NCBI GenBank assembly: GCA_907165135.1
Contig: OU015569.1
Coordinates: 3,348,001 to 3,412,000, forward strand
Source of the DNA: Oikopleura dioica
Taxonomy: Eukaryota > Animalia > Chordata
Reading direction: 5' to 3'
DNA: 64,000 nucleotides
Positions 9,400-64,000 of the stretch are shown in pieces. The position numbers and the translations under genes were made by a program. Position 1 is the first letter of the stretch, and each line of letters starts with the position of its first letter. The notes under the pieces are model-generated. The model ran no database searches. It had not been told where the DNA came from and was given only the letters and a program-made list of their open reading frames with translations.

Positions 9400-10650
9400 A
9401 GATGGCGGCGCGAAACGACACCAACCAAGATTGGTGTAGTCAACTTGCCGAACCCCAACGCTTTCCGAAACTGGATTTGCGGGGTACCCAAAATCCCTGA
9501 GGAATCTCCTAGAGATATCAAGGAATTCTACTTCATGGACAGCCCTTCTTTTGACACGGCCAATTTCATCAAAATCGAAGAGAATACACCCAATTTCATT
9601 CTCTTCGACACCAAGGTCGGCGATCGCTCCCTCGAGGTGAGTTATCTGAACTCATAATTCTATGTTGATAATTTTTTAGAACCCCGACCATGAAGATGCT
9701 ATTTTGGGCTTCATTCGAGGCTGCCAAGACCAATTCAAGATCCAGAAAAGGGTGAGTCGTAAACCAATGCGTTCGTTTCTTTACTAACTGAAATCAAGGA
9801 GAGGGTCGTTCCATGGCGCGATATCCCATGCCGCTTGAACATCTTCGAGCAGGCCAAGGTCACAGACCAGTGGTGCCAAAGCATGTTCAGCTGGATCTCG
9901 CCGAAGTGCAACAAATGTGGCTTTCACTGCCAGGCTCACGCCCTTCGACAAAAAACCGAATTCGTGACCACGGTCGAAGTAAGTAACAATGCTCGTCATG
10001 ATGATTGTATCACACTAGTCTAACAAATTTTGAGTAATAACTTACATGATCTGGCTTTAAAAATGACTTTAGAATTCGCGTATCGGACGCCTAAGAAAAC
10101 TGCTCTGGGCTGATGAGTTTCGTCTATCCATCGCCGCCATCTTCATTCCATTTGGCTTTTTCACTGCTGATTCTCTTCTGCTACTGGTAGATTGAAGTAA
10201 AAGTAAATTGAATAAATTGATATCGAAGATGAAAAGATCTTGGCTTGTTTGCATTCACATTTACAGTCGATTATCTTTGCAATAGACTTTGCGTTTTTTG
10301 AGCTTTGAATAGAGGATTCTCTAGAATTCTCGCCGGCAAGAGAGATGTTTATTCTTTAGTTGTCACTTCAATTTATGAAGTTAAAAAGTCCGAAAAGAGC
10401 ATAAATCCAGGTAAGATTTTGTCAAACTCAGAATAACAGTCGACACTTTTTGGGCAAATGTTGAAATACCACTAACCTCTTTAATTTTAGGACTTTTACG
10501 AGGAATCTTCACATTGAAGAACGTCCAAGACACTGAAATACCCTCAATCTCAGTCGAAAAACGAGGGAGCGATAAGAAGACATCCAAGAAATCGGGTATC
10601 TTCACCTTGAATCCAAAAAGGATGTCTTGATCGAAAAATATGAAACCTGA
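9400..10650 (+). CDS. Hypothetical multi-exon protein; 3' part paralogous to 60230-60570
   Basis: Open exons with GT donors at about 9400-9636, 9680-9750 and 9790-9979 (Cys/His-rich KCNKCGFHCQAH). Terminal exon has repeated SGIFTL. Confidence 0.4.
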
Positions 10651-11549
10651 ATAAAATCAATTTTCCTTCAATCTATCAAATCCAAAAGCTCTCAAATCCT
10701 TTGAATTTCAAAGTTTGAAAGTTTTTGCAAGTTTCCCATTTTATTTTGAACAAACCCTTGTTTTATCTTGGCACAATAGCATAATGCAATATTGTATAGT
10801 ATACACAGTATATTGCATCTATTATATATACAATATAACTTATATTATATAAGGGGGTTCCCTTATAACAATATATATATTTATAATTTTTTGTATATTT
10901 TCGAGTCTAAATATCAAACAACTTTGGAAACTCAATTTGGTTCGATCCTCCTTTTTCCTGCGCCCTGGCCAATCAGGACAAACAGAGAAAGTCATTATCG
11001 TACCTTCCATAAAATAATTTTAAAAATAACTAAACGCGAAAGTTCCACAACAATAAGAAAACCGAGAAGAAAACAATCAAGAGTAGATTCGTCGTATCGT
11101 TAGAAAAGATACGTTAATTGGTGCATCTTTTGAAGTTTTAAAAGTCTTTCGAGGCCGCGTTAAAAACACTTCGCTTGAAACAATTTCCAAATTTGGCGAT
11201 TCCAACCGACGAAAATTTTTTTCGAGAGAGTTCACGGCAGCTGCAAAGATATCATCTCGCGAGTCGCTGTCCCTCACCCTCACCTCCGATGGTGCGAGCT
11301 TTCATTCGGCCGTTTGCAGTCCTAGAGGTAAGTCGCAAAGATAATTTTTCCTAATTTCCGGCCCTTCCCTTTTTTCCTCGTCCAGCGCTGCTTTTGTCCC
11401 ACAAGTTCAAGAGCTCCTCCATTATTCATTACAAAATCAATATTTTGATTCCGCGCGTTGAAAATTGAATCCGGTTACAGCCAAAAAACTGACCATTGTC
11501 TTTTTCTTGGAAGATTTTCAAAGTGAATAATGAGTTGACTAAAGTAATA

Positions 11550-58567: not shown

Positions 58568-58937
58568 TGAGGAATGCTATTAGCATTAAATTAAATTGAA
58601 ACAAATTAACGAATTGCTAATAAATTACTATCAATAAGCTATTGACTCTTTCTTCAATCGAGTGACTGTTGTTCGGGTTCGCAGAAAGCCTTACAATTAG
58701 TATTATTTAATAAACAATTTAACAATAATATACCGGTAATAACCGAATTTTTAGCACGACAGCCCATTTTGTTTGCCATTTTCTCAAGAACGCTTTTCTA
58801 ATTGTTAGGAATTTTCTATTTGCAACGAAAAATAGGTGTTTTTCATGGCCATCTGCATCGGGTCGAAGCCTTTTCTCCGTTTCAAAAATCAAATCAGACC
58901 TAAGGTCTCGATTAAAAAAAAACTAATTTTCGTAAAA

Positions 58938-59855
58938 ATGTCAGAAGAAAAAAGAGTTATACGTCTCAGAGATTTCGCTAGGGAGAATCTTTCGAAATTC
59001 CGCGAAAAAGTTGATGGAGAGCTCTTAGCTGATTGTTCAAAAGCTGCTCGTGTAGAGAAAGGACAGTGATAAAATTTCTTTAACTTATTTGAATAAATAA
59101 AATTCTTATCTTGGAAGAGAAAAGGAAGAATTTCTTCAAAAATACAAAATGTTGAAAGAAGACGAAGAAAAAGCCTTTGCACTATTTGATGTTCTTAGGC
59201 CTAAATTTGAGATTGTAGAGCAGTGCTACATTAGCGCTAGGAATGGTTGAATAAATGACTTACTCTAATCACGAATAATAATTTGAAACCCATAACAAGA
59301 CAGAAAACCTTCGCTCATATAGAAGCTCGTCCTCAGTTCGCTCATCTTGTCCCTGAGGAGGCAAAGAAGCAGTCTGCTTGTCCTCACTGGACGCCAATAA
59401 CACAAGAACCAACATTGCCTGCAAACATCCCATCGTCGCCTTGTTACAGCCCAACATCGCCATCTTATAGCCCGACATCACCTTGTTATAGCCCGACTTC
59501 ACCTTGTTATAGCCCGACTTCTCCTTCTTACAGTCCACCATCAGCTAATTACAATTCTATGTACGGTGGAGAAGCATCTACATCTCAACATCAATACGAA
59601 ACATCACCTGCCTACAGCCCAACATCACCATCTTATAGCCCGACTTCTCCCTGTTATAGCCCAACATCACCGTCCTACAGTGATTCTACGCCAGCTGCTG
59701 CTCCTCCACCATCAGGAAATCCGCCTCTCCGATCTCAATTGATAACCACTCAACAAAAACCTAAGCGAAAGCGAAAACGAAAGAATCCTCCTTCACACAA
59801 AGCAAAACGAACTGCGTTTTATCGAAAATATCTCAAAAATGGCAACAATAATTGA
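58938..59855 (+). CDS. Lineage-specific nuclear protein with internal Pol II CTD-like heptads and a basic NLS-like tail
   Basis: Exons [17 protein letters not shown]..., [17 protein letters not shown]..., and a last exon with YSPTSP(S/C) repeats and KPKRKRKRK. Confidence 0.75.
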
Positions 59856-60229
59856 AATAAAATTAGCCATCACAAAAATCTCTCTCCGATTTCAAAATCT
59901 CAACGTTATTCTTTAAATTCATACACATTTAAAGCATGTTACATAAAACGAGTGAAACAAGGGCAAGCGTGAAAATTGCGATTGTTTAGAAAAAATTGGC
60001 TGAAATTGAAATGCACTTGTTGGAAAGACGAAATTCTCACCTGACAAGAAAGTTACGATATTATGTTGCCCGTCACATTCTTCTTCCGAGGTTAAATTGC
60101 GTTACTTTAACGAAGCTCCAGCTCTCTTTTCTGGGTGGAGCGCGTTTTGAAAATCAAAATTGATAAATTTTGAGAAAAGGAGATTTTCTCTAGAACACGT
60201 GTTTCCAAGCTAGTTGTTTTCCGCGCAGT

Positions 60230-60570
60230 CCTCACTTCACTTTCACGAAGTTTGAAAGTCCGAAAAGAGCGAAAATCAAGGTAAGACTTTGTTGATAAGA
60301 ATCAATACGAAAAAAAGTTGTATTTTTTCACACGTAGTCTAAAGCATAAACATCACAGTCTGCGACAGACACTAACACTTCCCATTTAGCCGGTTGGCGA
60401 CGACCAGGTCAACGACGAGGCATCTTCACCTTGAAGAACTTCCAGGACTCCCAACGACGATCAACCGTTATCGAAAAACGAGTTTGAGGTCAGAAGACAT
60501 CCAAGAAGTCCGGCATCTTCACGTTGATCCTTAAAAAGGATGTCCTGGTCGAAAAATATGAAGCCTGAAT
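60230..60570 (+). pseudogene. Paralog of 10360-10660 with an in-frame TGA
   Basis: GIFTLKNFQDSQRRSTVIEKRV*GQKTSKKSGIFTLILKKDVLVEKYEA*; shares the donor CAAG/GTAAG and the AATAAAATCAA 3' end. Confidence 0.5.
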
Positions 60571-61149
60571 AAAATCAATTTCCATCAATCCCAATTATAA
60601 AAAAACTATTCAGGTTAAATAATACTTGATAGTTTTTATGAGTCGACTCCTTTTACTGCAGCCAGGTTACGAATCGGTTAAATATACCGGTATTCGGGAT
60701 TCAATTATATAGGTGAAAACAGCAGAACTTCACAAAACCCCTTTGAACAACTTCAAGATTTTAACCAACCATTCAATGTTTGAGGCTGAGTCCTTGTTGA
60801 TATCAATTAAAGTAAAGTCCAATTCTATGTCATTTATTTCCTTTTCTTTCGAAAAACAAACCAGCAGCAAAACTTTCTAGCTATTAACTCTTTCTTCTTC
60901 TTTCTTCATTCGATTTGCTGTTCCTCGGGCTCACAGGAAACCTAACAATTACTTATTTGAAAAGCTGTCGTTTTAACAAACCTCCATTCGTTCACCATCT
61001 TGACTTGCTTCAATCGCCGCAATTTCATCTGCAAGCACTCGTTGCTAATTCAAATCTTATCAAAAGAAATGGTAAAAGAAGATACCTTTTGAAGCTCCTT
61101 GTAAATGGGAATCTTGGTAAAGTCAGACTCCCTCTCGACCAAGCTTTTT

Positions 61150-61900
61150 TATGAATTACAAAACACTCGAAAACCCGCCATGCTTTGATTGAATTCTTTC
61201 CTGTTGCAGATACTTTTGACTTCGAATGGAGCCAACAACAAGCCTGTGAATTCAGTGTCGAGACTAAGGATAACCGTAGCGCTCAATTTTTAAAATAAAG
61301 GACTAATACCTGGCCGCTTTGTTCTTCACTTCCAAATTATTGGCGGTCATCTTGCTTTAAAAACGTTTTCGATTAGCTTTATCTTTACAAAAGTGATTCT
61401 CATCAATACTTTAAATAATACGAGTTTGAAACGCTCCTTTTATTTTCGAAGACCTGTTCGCGGTAGCCAACGAGGTTCGTTTTTGCAGCTTTGGTCTTCT
61501 TCTTCGCCTTTCTGATATCGCTCTTTATTTTTGCTCTTTCTGCCTCTAAATTTTGCGCCAGTAATAAACATTCACTGAGACATACAAGAACAACTCTATC
61601 TCTAATTAAGAATTCGGCCGAGGAACTTACCTAGTTCGCGTGTTTTTTGGAGCTTCGAAAGAAGAAGAGTTCTGTAACTTTACAGGGAAATTGAAAACAA
61701 AATTATTTTTTCTGTAGTGATATCAGTTGCATCTAATAATTAGGAAAATTTCTTTAAAAATGGTCTCTACAAATTATTCGTTTATATCAACCCGTTTCCC
61801 ATCTCGCTGCTCTTGAGTGAGTTCCATCAACTCATCCTCCCCCGACTCCTGGCTTCCGTTTTCCATCTCCCTCTTCTGCGCAACTCTCGCACTGAACCGC
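61150..61900 (-). CDS. Possible lineage-specific multi-exon coiled-coil protein
   Basis: Open exons such as LAQNLEAERAKIKSDIRKAKKKTKAAK and DELMELTQEQRDGKR; joins unresolved. Confidence 0.3.
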
Positions 61901-62119
61901 GGCATTTTCAGAGAAAAAATTCAAATTCTCGATTTTACTCTTCGTTCTGAGTGCCGGGCGTCTTTCCTGTGAACGAGAGTCGACGTTTTTCGACTCGAAA
62001 CGGAAATCCAGAAAAGTTAAAAAAAGATAAACAGAATCGCCATCCAGGGAGTTGCTGCCTTTGAAAAATAAAAATAACCGATAAAGATTGAAATTCTTGC
62101 AAGATCAAAAGAAGGGGGT

Positions 62120-62397
62120 CGGGGACTCGCAGTACCAAAGCTTTTTGGTACTGCCAGTACCAATTTTGGTACTGGGAGTACCAATTTTGGCTTTCCGAGT
62201 GATATTTTAACGAGATATTTCAATCGGAATAATAGTAGGCGGGTAAATAGAAGTGTATCCTGTCCGAATCAGTAAGTTTCTTATCACAGAACCCGCGGAG
62301 CGGGCGTTTCTGACTGACTAAAATTTTGCCTTGCCAAAATTGGTACTGGGAGTACCAAATTGGTACTGGCAGTACCAATTGGTACTGGGAGTCCCCG
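62120..62397. mobile_element. ~280-bp MITE-like element with palindromic subrepeats
   Basis: Ends CGGGGACTCGCAGTACCAA / TTGGTACTGGGAGTCCCCG; several TTGGTACT(GGG/GCC/GGC)AGTACCAA hairpin units at each end. Confidence 0.7.
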
Positions 62398-62724
62398 GTA
62401 GCCCAAAAGAAACGCTAAAATTTCTAGCGTTTGCTTTGTCTGAGTTCTGTGAAGGTGATTTTATTCATGAATCAATGGCAGTTTGATTATAGTACAAGAC
62501 ATGTTCAGGGGCTTTTTACTTTTTAGCTCGTCGTTCGATGTTTGAGGTGATTTCGTTCATCAGTCGACGGAACTTGTTTTCGTCCATTCTGATCTGGACA
62601 CTTTTTACGATCTCGCCGGCGATGTATTCGTACTGAACATCTAAGATGCTCGCTTTTTCCAACTCGAACACTTCTTTCAAAGGGTTCAACTTTTTCTAAG
62701 AAAAAACTCTTTCTTATGCTCTGA

Positions 62725-63252
62725 TCATGTGAGTACCCTTCCTTGGTTAATTGAGCCGATCGTCCATTGCGGAATCAACGAGCTTTGCCTTCCCGATATT
62801 TCCTGGCTGAGTTCTCTGATCGTACTCGCTCTGAAGAATATCTTAAGCTCCCATAGCTCAACTATTTCGACAAACCTATAGCCAGGATACAAGCGCACCA
62901 GATCGCTCAGGCTAATCGGCGGATTCTTGGGCCCTCCAGTTCGCATAAACACAATTTCCGCCAGAATCGTCCATCCGATCGCTCTAAAGAAGCCCTGTTT
63001 GGCCATTGAGGATCGAAAGCCCGCTCTGAAGAATGAATCGAGATCCTTGTTTATCGTCGGCCGCTCTTCTTCGGCCTCGACTTTCAGATCTTTGCCTTTC
63101 TTCTTCAAATAGTTCTGGATAAGAACGTTGGCTGCGTCGTCGTCGAATTTCAGATTGAAGTTGTTCAAGTTGCTCAGTATCGTGTTGACGTTTTTGACGT
63201 TTTTGGAGGGCGGGCCGTTCGGAGAGGCCTCGCGCTTTCGTTTTTCCGTCAC
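62725..63252 (-). CDS. Hypothetical nuclear protein (N-terminal KRKR, LisH-like helix); probably continues to about 62500
   Basis: 175-aa ORF MTEKRKREASPNG...DAANVLIQNYLKKKG...; start codon is an alternative start in the track. Confidence 0.5.
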   Translation of the reverse strand: MTEKRKREASPNGPPSKNVKNVNTILSNLNNFNLKFDDDAANVLIQNYLKKKGKDLKVEAEEERPTINKDLDSFFRAGFRSSMAKQGFFRAIGWTILAEIVFMRTGGPKNPPISLSDLVRLYPGYRFVEIVELWELKIFFRASTIRELSQEISGRQSSLIPQWTIGSINQGRVLT

Positions 63253-63273
63253 TAGAAACGGTTGAAAATGATT

Positions 63274-63888
63274 TCAGCGCGATATTTTACCTCTATAGAC
63301 GACATTTTTATCAAACTTGAAGGACTCGCTGCATTGCGTGGCGACGATGAGAACCGTCTTCTCGACGAGCGACGTCTTTGTCGCTTTGTCGAGCTCAACG
63401 GTGCGAAAGTTTCCGTCTTCCTGCTCTGCCATCGGCCTCAGTTCGTCCCTGACTTCGCTATTGTGGTACATTTCCGTGGCGAGGTCCTCGATTCGCAGCC
63501 CTCGATTCGGCTTGATCAGTTCTTTCATCTTCTTTCTGATGATTTCGTACAAACAGAGTTGGTTTGGAAGCAAGCAATCTCTTTCCCAGTTCCTTATTTC
63601 GTTCTTTGACCACTCTTCGTGTTTGTTGTGCAAGTATTGGACCCATAGTATGCCCGAACACGGCCGGGGCCGCTCCTCGGGGTCCTCTGGATCGTTCATT
63701 TGAAACGGCATCAGAAACCAGGACAAATTCATCGGAGGATCTTCCGGGTGATTGAGCATGATCTTCCAAAAGGCGGCTTCGATCTCGTAGCTTTTGAACT
63801 CGTTTGCATTCGGCGATCTACGAATATACTCGTGAATATAAGCAAGAAGAGAATCGTCAGCGGGTTCTTCGTCGAACTTGTGCAGTCC
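63274..63888 (-). CDS. Hypothetical protein, 3' exon(s); begins beyond the window
   Basis: Open frame from acceptor near 63890 (LHKFDEEPADDSLLAYIHEYIRR...) through ORF 63274-63759. Confidence 0.5.
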   Translation of the reverse strand, partial: GLHKFDEEPADDSLLAYIHEYIRRSPNANEFKSYEIEAAFWKIMLNHPEDPPMNLSWFLMPFQMNDPEDPEERPRPCSGILWVQYLHNKHEEWSKNEIRNWERDCLLPNQLCLYEIIRKKMKELIKPNRGLRIEDLATEMYHNSEVRDELRPMAEQEDGNFRTVELDKATKTSLVEKTVLIVATQCSESFKFDKNVVYRGKISR

Positions 63889-64000
63889 TAAAACAAGTAT
63901 TTATCGATTCTATTCGATGAGAAAGGCGCACCTATGGAAACAGGATCGTTCCGCGTTGATGGCTCAGAAAACCTGTGCTCGATCGAACAGGCAACAATTT

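Follow-up and report, generated by a model that had tools for sequence, protein, structure and literature searches.

What is a run of RNA polymerase II (Pol II) tail heptads doing in a gene that is not RPB1? The question is raised by a locus on chromosome XSR of the Okinawa Oikopleura dioica genome, OKI2018_I69 (assembly GCA_907165135.1, OU015569.1), in which a reading made from the DNA without database searches (here called the sequence-only reading) had seen a small protein that mimics RPB1's carboxy-terminal domain (CTD). We analyzed the 64,000-nucleotide stretch of DNA that contains this locus, which we call the window and whose numbering is used throughout. An annotated locus, L002, agrees with the window base for base along 12,472 bases, at an offset of 51,528, and there the public OKI2018_I69 annotation places a gene for a 215-aa protein at 59149 to 59855 on the plus strand (L002:7621-8327). 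The genes run in the order TEP, hydratase, the 215-aa gene, a 103-aa gene, and two minus-strand genes of 175 aa and 945 aa.

Read in frame, the DNA of the array encodes 13 heptad units in a single, unbroken seven-residue register. Seven of the 13 are perfect YSPTSP[S/C] units, four at 59445 to 59528 and three at 59613 to 59675, and the other six are degenerate, YSDSTPA among them. Position 7 is a cysteine in three of the seven perfect units; a fourth cysteine of the array sits in a partial unit, NIPSSPC. The sequence-only reading had counted seven near-consensus heptads, three of them with Cys7, and in the reading frame all seven proved to be exact YSPTSP[SC] repeats. It had also described two separate blocks. 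Both perfect runs are indeed present, but they are parts of one continuous 13-unit array: the spacer between them is exactly four heptad lengths long and keeps TSP in register at positions 4 to 6, so this is one array in which the middle and the edges have decayed. The exact four-heptad length and the in-register TSP also rule out the spacer as an exonized intron.

Pfam PF05001 (RNA_pol_Rpb1_R) matched four stretches with an E value of 3.4e-13 and a score of 49.5 bits, compared with a curated cutoff of 20.3 bits. In the PDB, phmmer found RPB1 tails, with E values down to 7e-64, together with CTD peptides from entries for the Mediator head (4gwq), capping enzyme (1p16), a CID domain (4jxt) and influenza polymerase (5m3h). 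A CDK7 entry (8p7l) was also matched, and the remaining matches were two weak ones, to chains named SAKe6BR and SAKeCEref. The first block of perfect heptads (28 aa) is at least as long as the CTD peptides in the solved complexes 4gwq, 1p16 and 4jxt (an RPRD-type CID), and the second (21 aa) equals the shorter CTD peptides of solved complexes. For each CTD-binding module whose complex has been solved, a run of four consensus heptads is long enough. The heptad array is confirmed as genuine, well past chance expectation. It is followed by ~50 further basic residues, so that the tandem heptads are present without being C-terminal.

The codons of the array bear on whether the repeats are maintained as peptide or merely as DNA. 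Among the seven perfect heptads, the third codon position varies at six of seven sites and the first and second positions at only one of 14 (Fisher P = 8.5e-4). Pairwise comparison of these heptads gave 68 synonymous and 15 nonsynonymous differences, and all 15 of the latter are the same Ser/Cys change (TCT/TGT) at position 7. Within the heptads, Ser2 is encoded by AGC, Ser5 by TCN and Ser7 by TCY. Because variation falls mostly at third codon positions, the pattern indicates selection on the heptad peptide, although the synonymous diversity could instead stem from an RPB1 segment that was already diverse. Tandem Repeats Finder recovered the 21-nt period with matches of only 80% and 67%; these values and the third-position variation rule out a DNA microsatellite, and the synonymous variation between heptads that had been noticed from the sequence is therefore real. 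Position 7 is the most variable position in metazoan RPB1 tails. O. dioica reportedly gains cysteines in disordered regions, a tendency that Cys7 may reflect, and the Cys7 units are nonphosphorylatable at that position.

We then asked what gene model carries the array (Table 1). The annotated gene spans 707 nt and its coding sequence is 648 nt, which leaves a single 59-nt intron. By frame bookkeeping, no 59-nt GT-AG intron fits the annotated gene, and the fitting options have noncanonical donors. AUGUSTUS is not known to accept noncanonical splice sites unless they are backed by an RNA hint. Since the OKI2018_I69 annotation was produced by AUGUSTUS with RNA-seq hints (PMC8008620), the noncanonical annotated intron indirectly suggests that a spliced transcript exists. 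Noncanonical introns make up ~11% of the introns in this assembly, and GA-AG introns are notably common in O. dioica (PMC8008620, PMC7072748). A canonical GT donor at 59246, which fits acceptors at 59322 and 59325, was rejected: it does not give an intron of the 59 nt that the annotation requires. Frame tests turned up other candidate in-frame combinations of donor and acceptor. The plus-strand frame that contains the array is open from 59283 to 59855, over 190 codons, and the heptad region has no introns. Upstream, a candidate additional exon would connect with position 59118 by way of a GT-AG intron of 52 nt (59066 to 59117) that keeps the frame, for a product of 268 aa; alternatively, this segment may represent an upstream ORF or be untranscribed. 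The ~290 aa of the sequence-only reading was accordingly an overestimate, the annotated protein having 215 aa and the longest model 268 aa.

Table 1. Features of the 215-aa heptad gene, in window coordinates
Feature	Coordinates	Strand	Remarks
Candidate extra 5′ exon, MSEEKRV...VEKG	58938-59065	+	Frame fit; outside the public annotation
First coding exon	59149-59240 (GA donor) or 59149-59244 (GG donor)	+	ATG at 59149; charged helix
59-nt intron	59241-59299 (GA-AG) or 59245-59303 (GG-AG)	+	Sole frame-keeping 59-nt options that end in AG
Last coding exon	59300-59855 (GG-AG, 59304-59855)	+	Open frame; PF05001; stop codon TGA at 59853-59855
Heptad array	59424-59696	+	13 units; matches to RPB1 tails and CTD peptides in the PDB
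KPKRKRKRK, NLS-like run	59757-59783	+	Sequence reading
AATAAA, polyadenylation-type hexamer	59856-59861	+	Directly 3′ of the stop codon

In the last exon, a linker rich in Pro and Ser precedes the heptad array, after which come a Pro-rich stretch, the NLS-like run and, finally, a basic tail. The KPKRKRKRK stretch that had been reported lies ahead of that tail and is a putative nuclear localization signal of the classical monopartite type (K-K/R-x-K/R). Single-sequence AlphaFold2 predicted one long helix for the candidate 5′ exon (pLDDT 94) and a single helix for the piece that begins at the annotated ATG (pLDDT 96.6), in agreement with the helical N terminus proposed earlier. When the three candidate exons were searched with hmmscan, PF05001 was the only family matched; the polymerase core domains RNA_pol_Rpb1_1 to RNA_pol_Rpb1_7 were absent, as were Pfam NGN, KOW and zinc-finger families, CCCH included. 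Neither Pfam nor HMMER found an RPB1 catalytic domain or the RPB1 linker, and matches to RPB1 align to the heptads alone. The description of a small protein that is not RPB1 therefore stands.

DNA contigs from two other runs, X5 and X6, cover the locus at 95 to 99% identity. X5 carries 23 substitutions between 58798 and 60072; among the 21 listed, none falls in 59317 to 59730, the segment that holds the whole array, and in X5 the heptads are to this extent conserved between strains. Five of the listed X5 differences are coding. Two of these, at 59202 and 59208 in the first exon, are synonymous, and three are nonsynonymous (H to Y at 59316, R to P at 59731 and Q to H at 59756), all outside the heptad array. 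X6 has 20 private substitutions in the gene region. Neither X5 nor X6 has an indel within 59337 to 59855; strain differences and indels cluster in the region of the 59-nt intron, at 59241 to 59303. The start of the heptad exon, at 59304 to 59360, is a tandem duplication in which TTCGCTCAT...CAG occurs twice, and X6 has a 7-nt insertion at 59329 to 59331 (+T at 59329 and +GCTCAT at 59331) that brings TTCGCTCAT to three copies. With splicing as annotated, the insertion would shift the frame 5′ of the heptads. This duplication hot spot includes candidate splice acceptors. Farther upstream, in intergenic DNA that separates the hydratase gene from the candidate 5′ exon, X6 lacks 44 bases at 58785 to 58828 and has GG in their place, and the X5 contigs break at the same site.

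Heptad-coding contigs from elsewhere in the X5 assembly match the locus only up to 59476 or only from 59628 and then diverge, which argues against the 215-aa gene being a recent copy of RPB1 or having a close paralog, so far as such contigs can tell. Contig depth at the gene is the same as at the single-copy genes on either side, in X5 as well as in X6, so the locus is single copy, and the 64-kb window contains no second copy. Given these observations and the ordinary genes upstream, the selfish gene family that had been suggested is not supported. The related suggestion of an orphan-gene neighborhood holds on one side only: the 215-aa gene and its three downstream neighbors (103, 175 and 945 aa) have no Pfam record in the annotation, but the upstream neighbors, TEP/CD109 and methylglutaconyl-CoA hydratase (OKI2018_I69.XSR.g14205), are ordinary and conserved.

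Two oligo-dT RNA runs that carry the same species label yielded only five partial reads, all 90 to 95% alike, across a 2.9-kb stretch in which the hydratase gene lies. Near-zero coverage even of a housekeeping gene makes these runs, which probably come from another cryptic lineage, uninformative about the 215-aa gene rather than a sign that it is silent.

Relatives of the gene were sought in protein collections and at the corresponding Bergen locus. With the last exon as query, HMMER was run exhaustively against 1.84 billion representatives and gave 711 matches at E ≤ 0.001. Like a length-restricted word-index search with the same exon, it returned only proteins matched through their heptads, namely, RPB1s, pieces of RPB1 and various small proteins with heptads. 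A scan of the ESM Atlas and JGI metagenomes with the last exon gave no usable relative. By BLAST, the N terminus, the spacer and the tail resembled none of the 120 proteins retrieved first, and when 220 retrieved proteins were screened for motifs, not one had repeated Cys7 units or Cys7 units together with a basic run. The annotated Okinawa protein is itself missing from these collections, so the absence of relatives there is weak evidence.

When the 12.8-kb Bergen locus L003 was aligned with the window, nothing but TEP and hydratase exons matched, with 68 to 88% nucleotide identity, and the homology ended at 58568. L003 contains no heptads, and in a tblastx comparison it had no match to window positions 58584 to 64000. 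Downstream of the hydratase gene, from L003:6780 onward, Bergen has a minus-strand C2H2 zinc-finger gene, whereas Okinawa has the four genes without a Pfam match. Synteny between Okinawa and Bergen thus breaks right after the methylglutaconyl-CoA hydratase gene, between 58568 and 58584. As far as can be seen, and given how heavily rearranged the O. dioica lineages are, the 215-aa gene appears to be lineage restricted; the lineage specificity that had been put forward is consistent with its absence from the syntenic Bergen locus and with the lack of any detected relative beyond the heptads. The Bergen hydratase itself is annotated at L003:5517-6779 (FN653027.1) as two models of 111 and 169 aa. 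Elsewhere it is a single model, of 276 aa in Okinawa and 287 aa on the Bergen allele scaffold, and the division is probably an annotation split.

Mimicry of the CTD is already known, in the form of single degenerate motifs (PIE-1 and the Trf4 NIM) and of the differing repeats of Spt5, and we compared the 215-aa protein with each. With the tail of RPB1 it shares the identical consensus, YSPTSPS, in tandem and in register, and nonsynonymous variation confined to position 7. It differs from RPB1 in having no polymerase domains, RPB1 linker or acidic tip, in having only seven perfect units, and in its Cys7 residues, unrelated helical N terminus and basic C terminus. PIE-1 of Caenorhabditis elegans is a germline transcription repressor whose CTD-like YAPMAPT motif interferes with P-TEFb. 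Like PIE-1, the 215-aa protein would be a nonpolymerase nuclear protein (its nuclear location being predicted) that is proposed to work through CTD-like heptads. PIE-1, however, has one degenerate, nonphosphorylatable heptad and CCCH zinc fingers, whereas here there are seven phosphorylatable consensus heptads in which Ser2 and Ser5 are kept, no zinc finger by Pfam and no sequence relationship. The Trf4 NIM is a CTD mimic that is bound by the CID of yeast Nrd1 in competition with Pol II (PMC4186968). It provides a precedent for a short CTD-like peptide in a nonpolymerase protein that binds a CTD-interaction domain, but it is a single, acidic 9-residue motif that imitates Ser5P rather than a tandem array of consensus heptads. 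The C-terminal repeats of Spt5 contain a CTD-like motif that is phosphorylated by CDK9 (PMC7070488); there, a repeated Ser/Thr-Pro motif outside RPB1 serves as both CTD-kinase substrate and docking platform. The Spt5 repeats have another consensus and sit on a conserved NGN/KOW elongation factor, unlike the 215-aa protein, which lacks NGN and KOW. Other eukaryotes have several uncharacterized non-RPB1 proteins with PF05001 repeats, namely, P0082 (heptads and RING), P0094 and P0103 (BTB and degenerate heptads), P0098 and P0014. These too are small proteins in which runs of CTD-type heptads are joined to unrelated parts, but nothing outside the heptads is alike, and none has Cys7 heptads or a basic tail.

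We tentatively favor the explanation that this is a genuine, lineage-restricted gene of the X-specific chromosome region, whose product is nuclear and displays heptads of the CTD type to the kinases and readers of the CTD. The 215-aa product would consist of a short helical N terminus, a disordered Ser/Pro-rich body that carries the heptads, a basic signal of the nuclear-import type and a basic tail. It would enter the nucleus, where its heptads, which cannot be told chemically from the polymerase tail, could serve as substrates of CTD kinases of the CDK7/9/12 type and as binding sites for CTD readers, phosphatases and isomerases. As a decoy, the protein would compete with Pol II for CTD factors; as a scaffold, it would bring those factors to a binding partner of its N-terminal helix. 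Nuclear location, phosphorylation, partner binding and the alternative of decoy or scaffold are what we infer for this protein from its parts.

Other origins would account for some of the same observations. The gene may be a young orphan, transcribed and perhaps also translated, that formed around a captured piece of RPB1 tail-coding sequence, with heptads that are a leftover without a CTD role in a gene that is drifting. The absence of the gene from the syntenic Bergen locus and the failure to find relatives would be expected of such an origin, as would the decayed middle and edges of the array, the fast evolution of the flanks (three of the five listed X5 coding differences are nonsynonymous, and all lie outside the array) and the X6 7-nt insertion near the exon start. 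Yet nothing besides the heptads is RPB1-like, and the X5 heptad contigs, which match for only a few dozen bases before diverging, do not point to a recent copy. Also against it are perfect heptads that differ almost only at synonymous sites and contain no listed X5 difference, and the intact frame, NLS-type run and poly(A) signal. On balance, we consider a captured and functionless RPB1 piece unlikely.

The protein might instead be a nuclear, Ser-Pro-rich disordered protein that offers generic sites for proline-directed kinases or acts through condensate stickers, a client of Pol II hubs and not a specific mimic. The whole exon is of low complexity and rich in Pro and Ser, the basic runs suggest association with nucleic acid or condensates, and other eukaryotes have many unrelated small repeat proteins, some of them fused to RING or BTB domains. 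A generic S/P-rich region, however, would not need the specificity of seven exact consensus heptads whose nonsynonymous variation keeps to position 7. We see such a role as distinctly unlikely. At the far end is the possibility that there is no function at all and that the model is an annotation artifact or a pseudogene, its frame open by chance or through recent origin. Large protein collections lack the protein, the gene table gives it no Pfam record, its intron is noncanonical and X6 carries the frameshift-type insertion. Against this, an open frame of 190 codons at 41% G+C is improbable by chance (we estimate ~2e-5 per start); an ATG, the NLS-type run, a stop codon and AATAAA follow one another in order; the codon-position pattern indicates selection at the peptide level; and AUGUSTUS was run with RNA hints. 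We regard a nonfunctional locus as very unlikely.

Returning to the favored explanation of a protein that presents CTD heptads, a more far-reaching form of it can be imagined in which the product is a soluble, X-linked Pol II tail. In particular cells, for example, the germline or the early embryo, it would soak up kinases of the CDK7/CDK9 type or CTD readers and so adjust or shut down transcription by Pol II, or RNA processing, on a global scale. Such a protein would be a consensus-heptad counterpart, independently evolved in a larvacean, of the strategy of PIE-1, Pgc and Pem. We offer this as a long shot.

In the literature, we found no description of small non-RPB1 heptad proteins like P0082, nor of a natural, free-standing protein of consensus heptads with a signal of the nuclear-import type. 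If the gene is expressed, it would amount to a natural experiment on a detached Pol II tail, on the factors that such a tail captures and on the effect of Cys7 on the CTD code, and it would illustrate how a powerful interaction module can come into a very young gene. Without expression, the gene would be no more than a curiosity of a fast-evolving genome.

Two repeats were also noted among the neighbors on the downstream side. An interspersed repeat just downstream of the 215-aa gene, at 60232 to 60590, is 81 to 85% alike to a copy at 10363 to 10673. It overlaps the annotated 103-aa gene (60011 to 60534), and contig depth rises two- to fourfold at 60122 to 60500 in X5 and X6; given this overlap and the raised depth, the 103-aa gene may be repeat derived. 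Farther on, an inverted repeat of ~70 bases (62120 to 62191 and 62333 to 62397), with arms that are 85% complementary and lie ~140 bases apart, sits just upstream of the end of the annotated 945-aa minus-strand gene.
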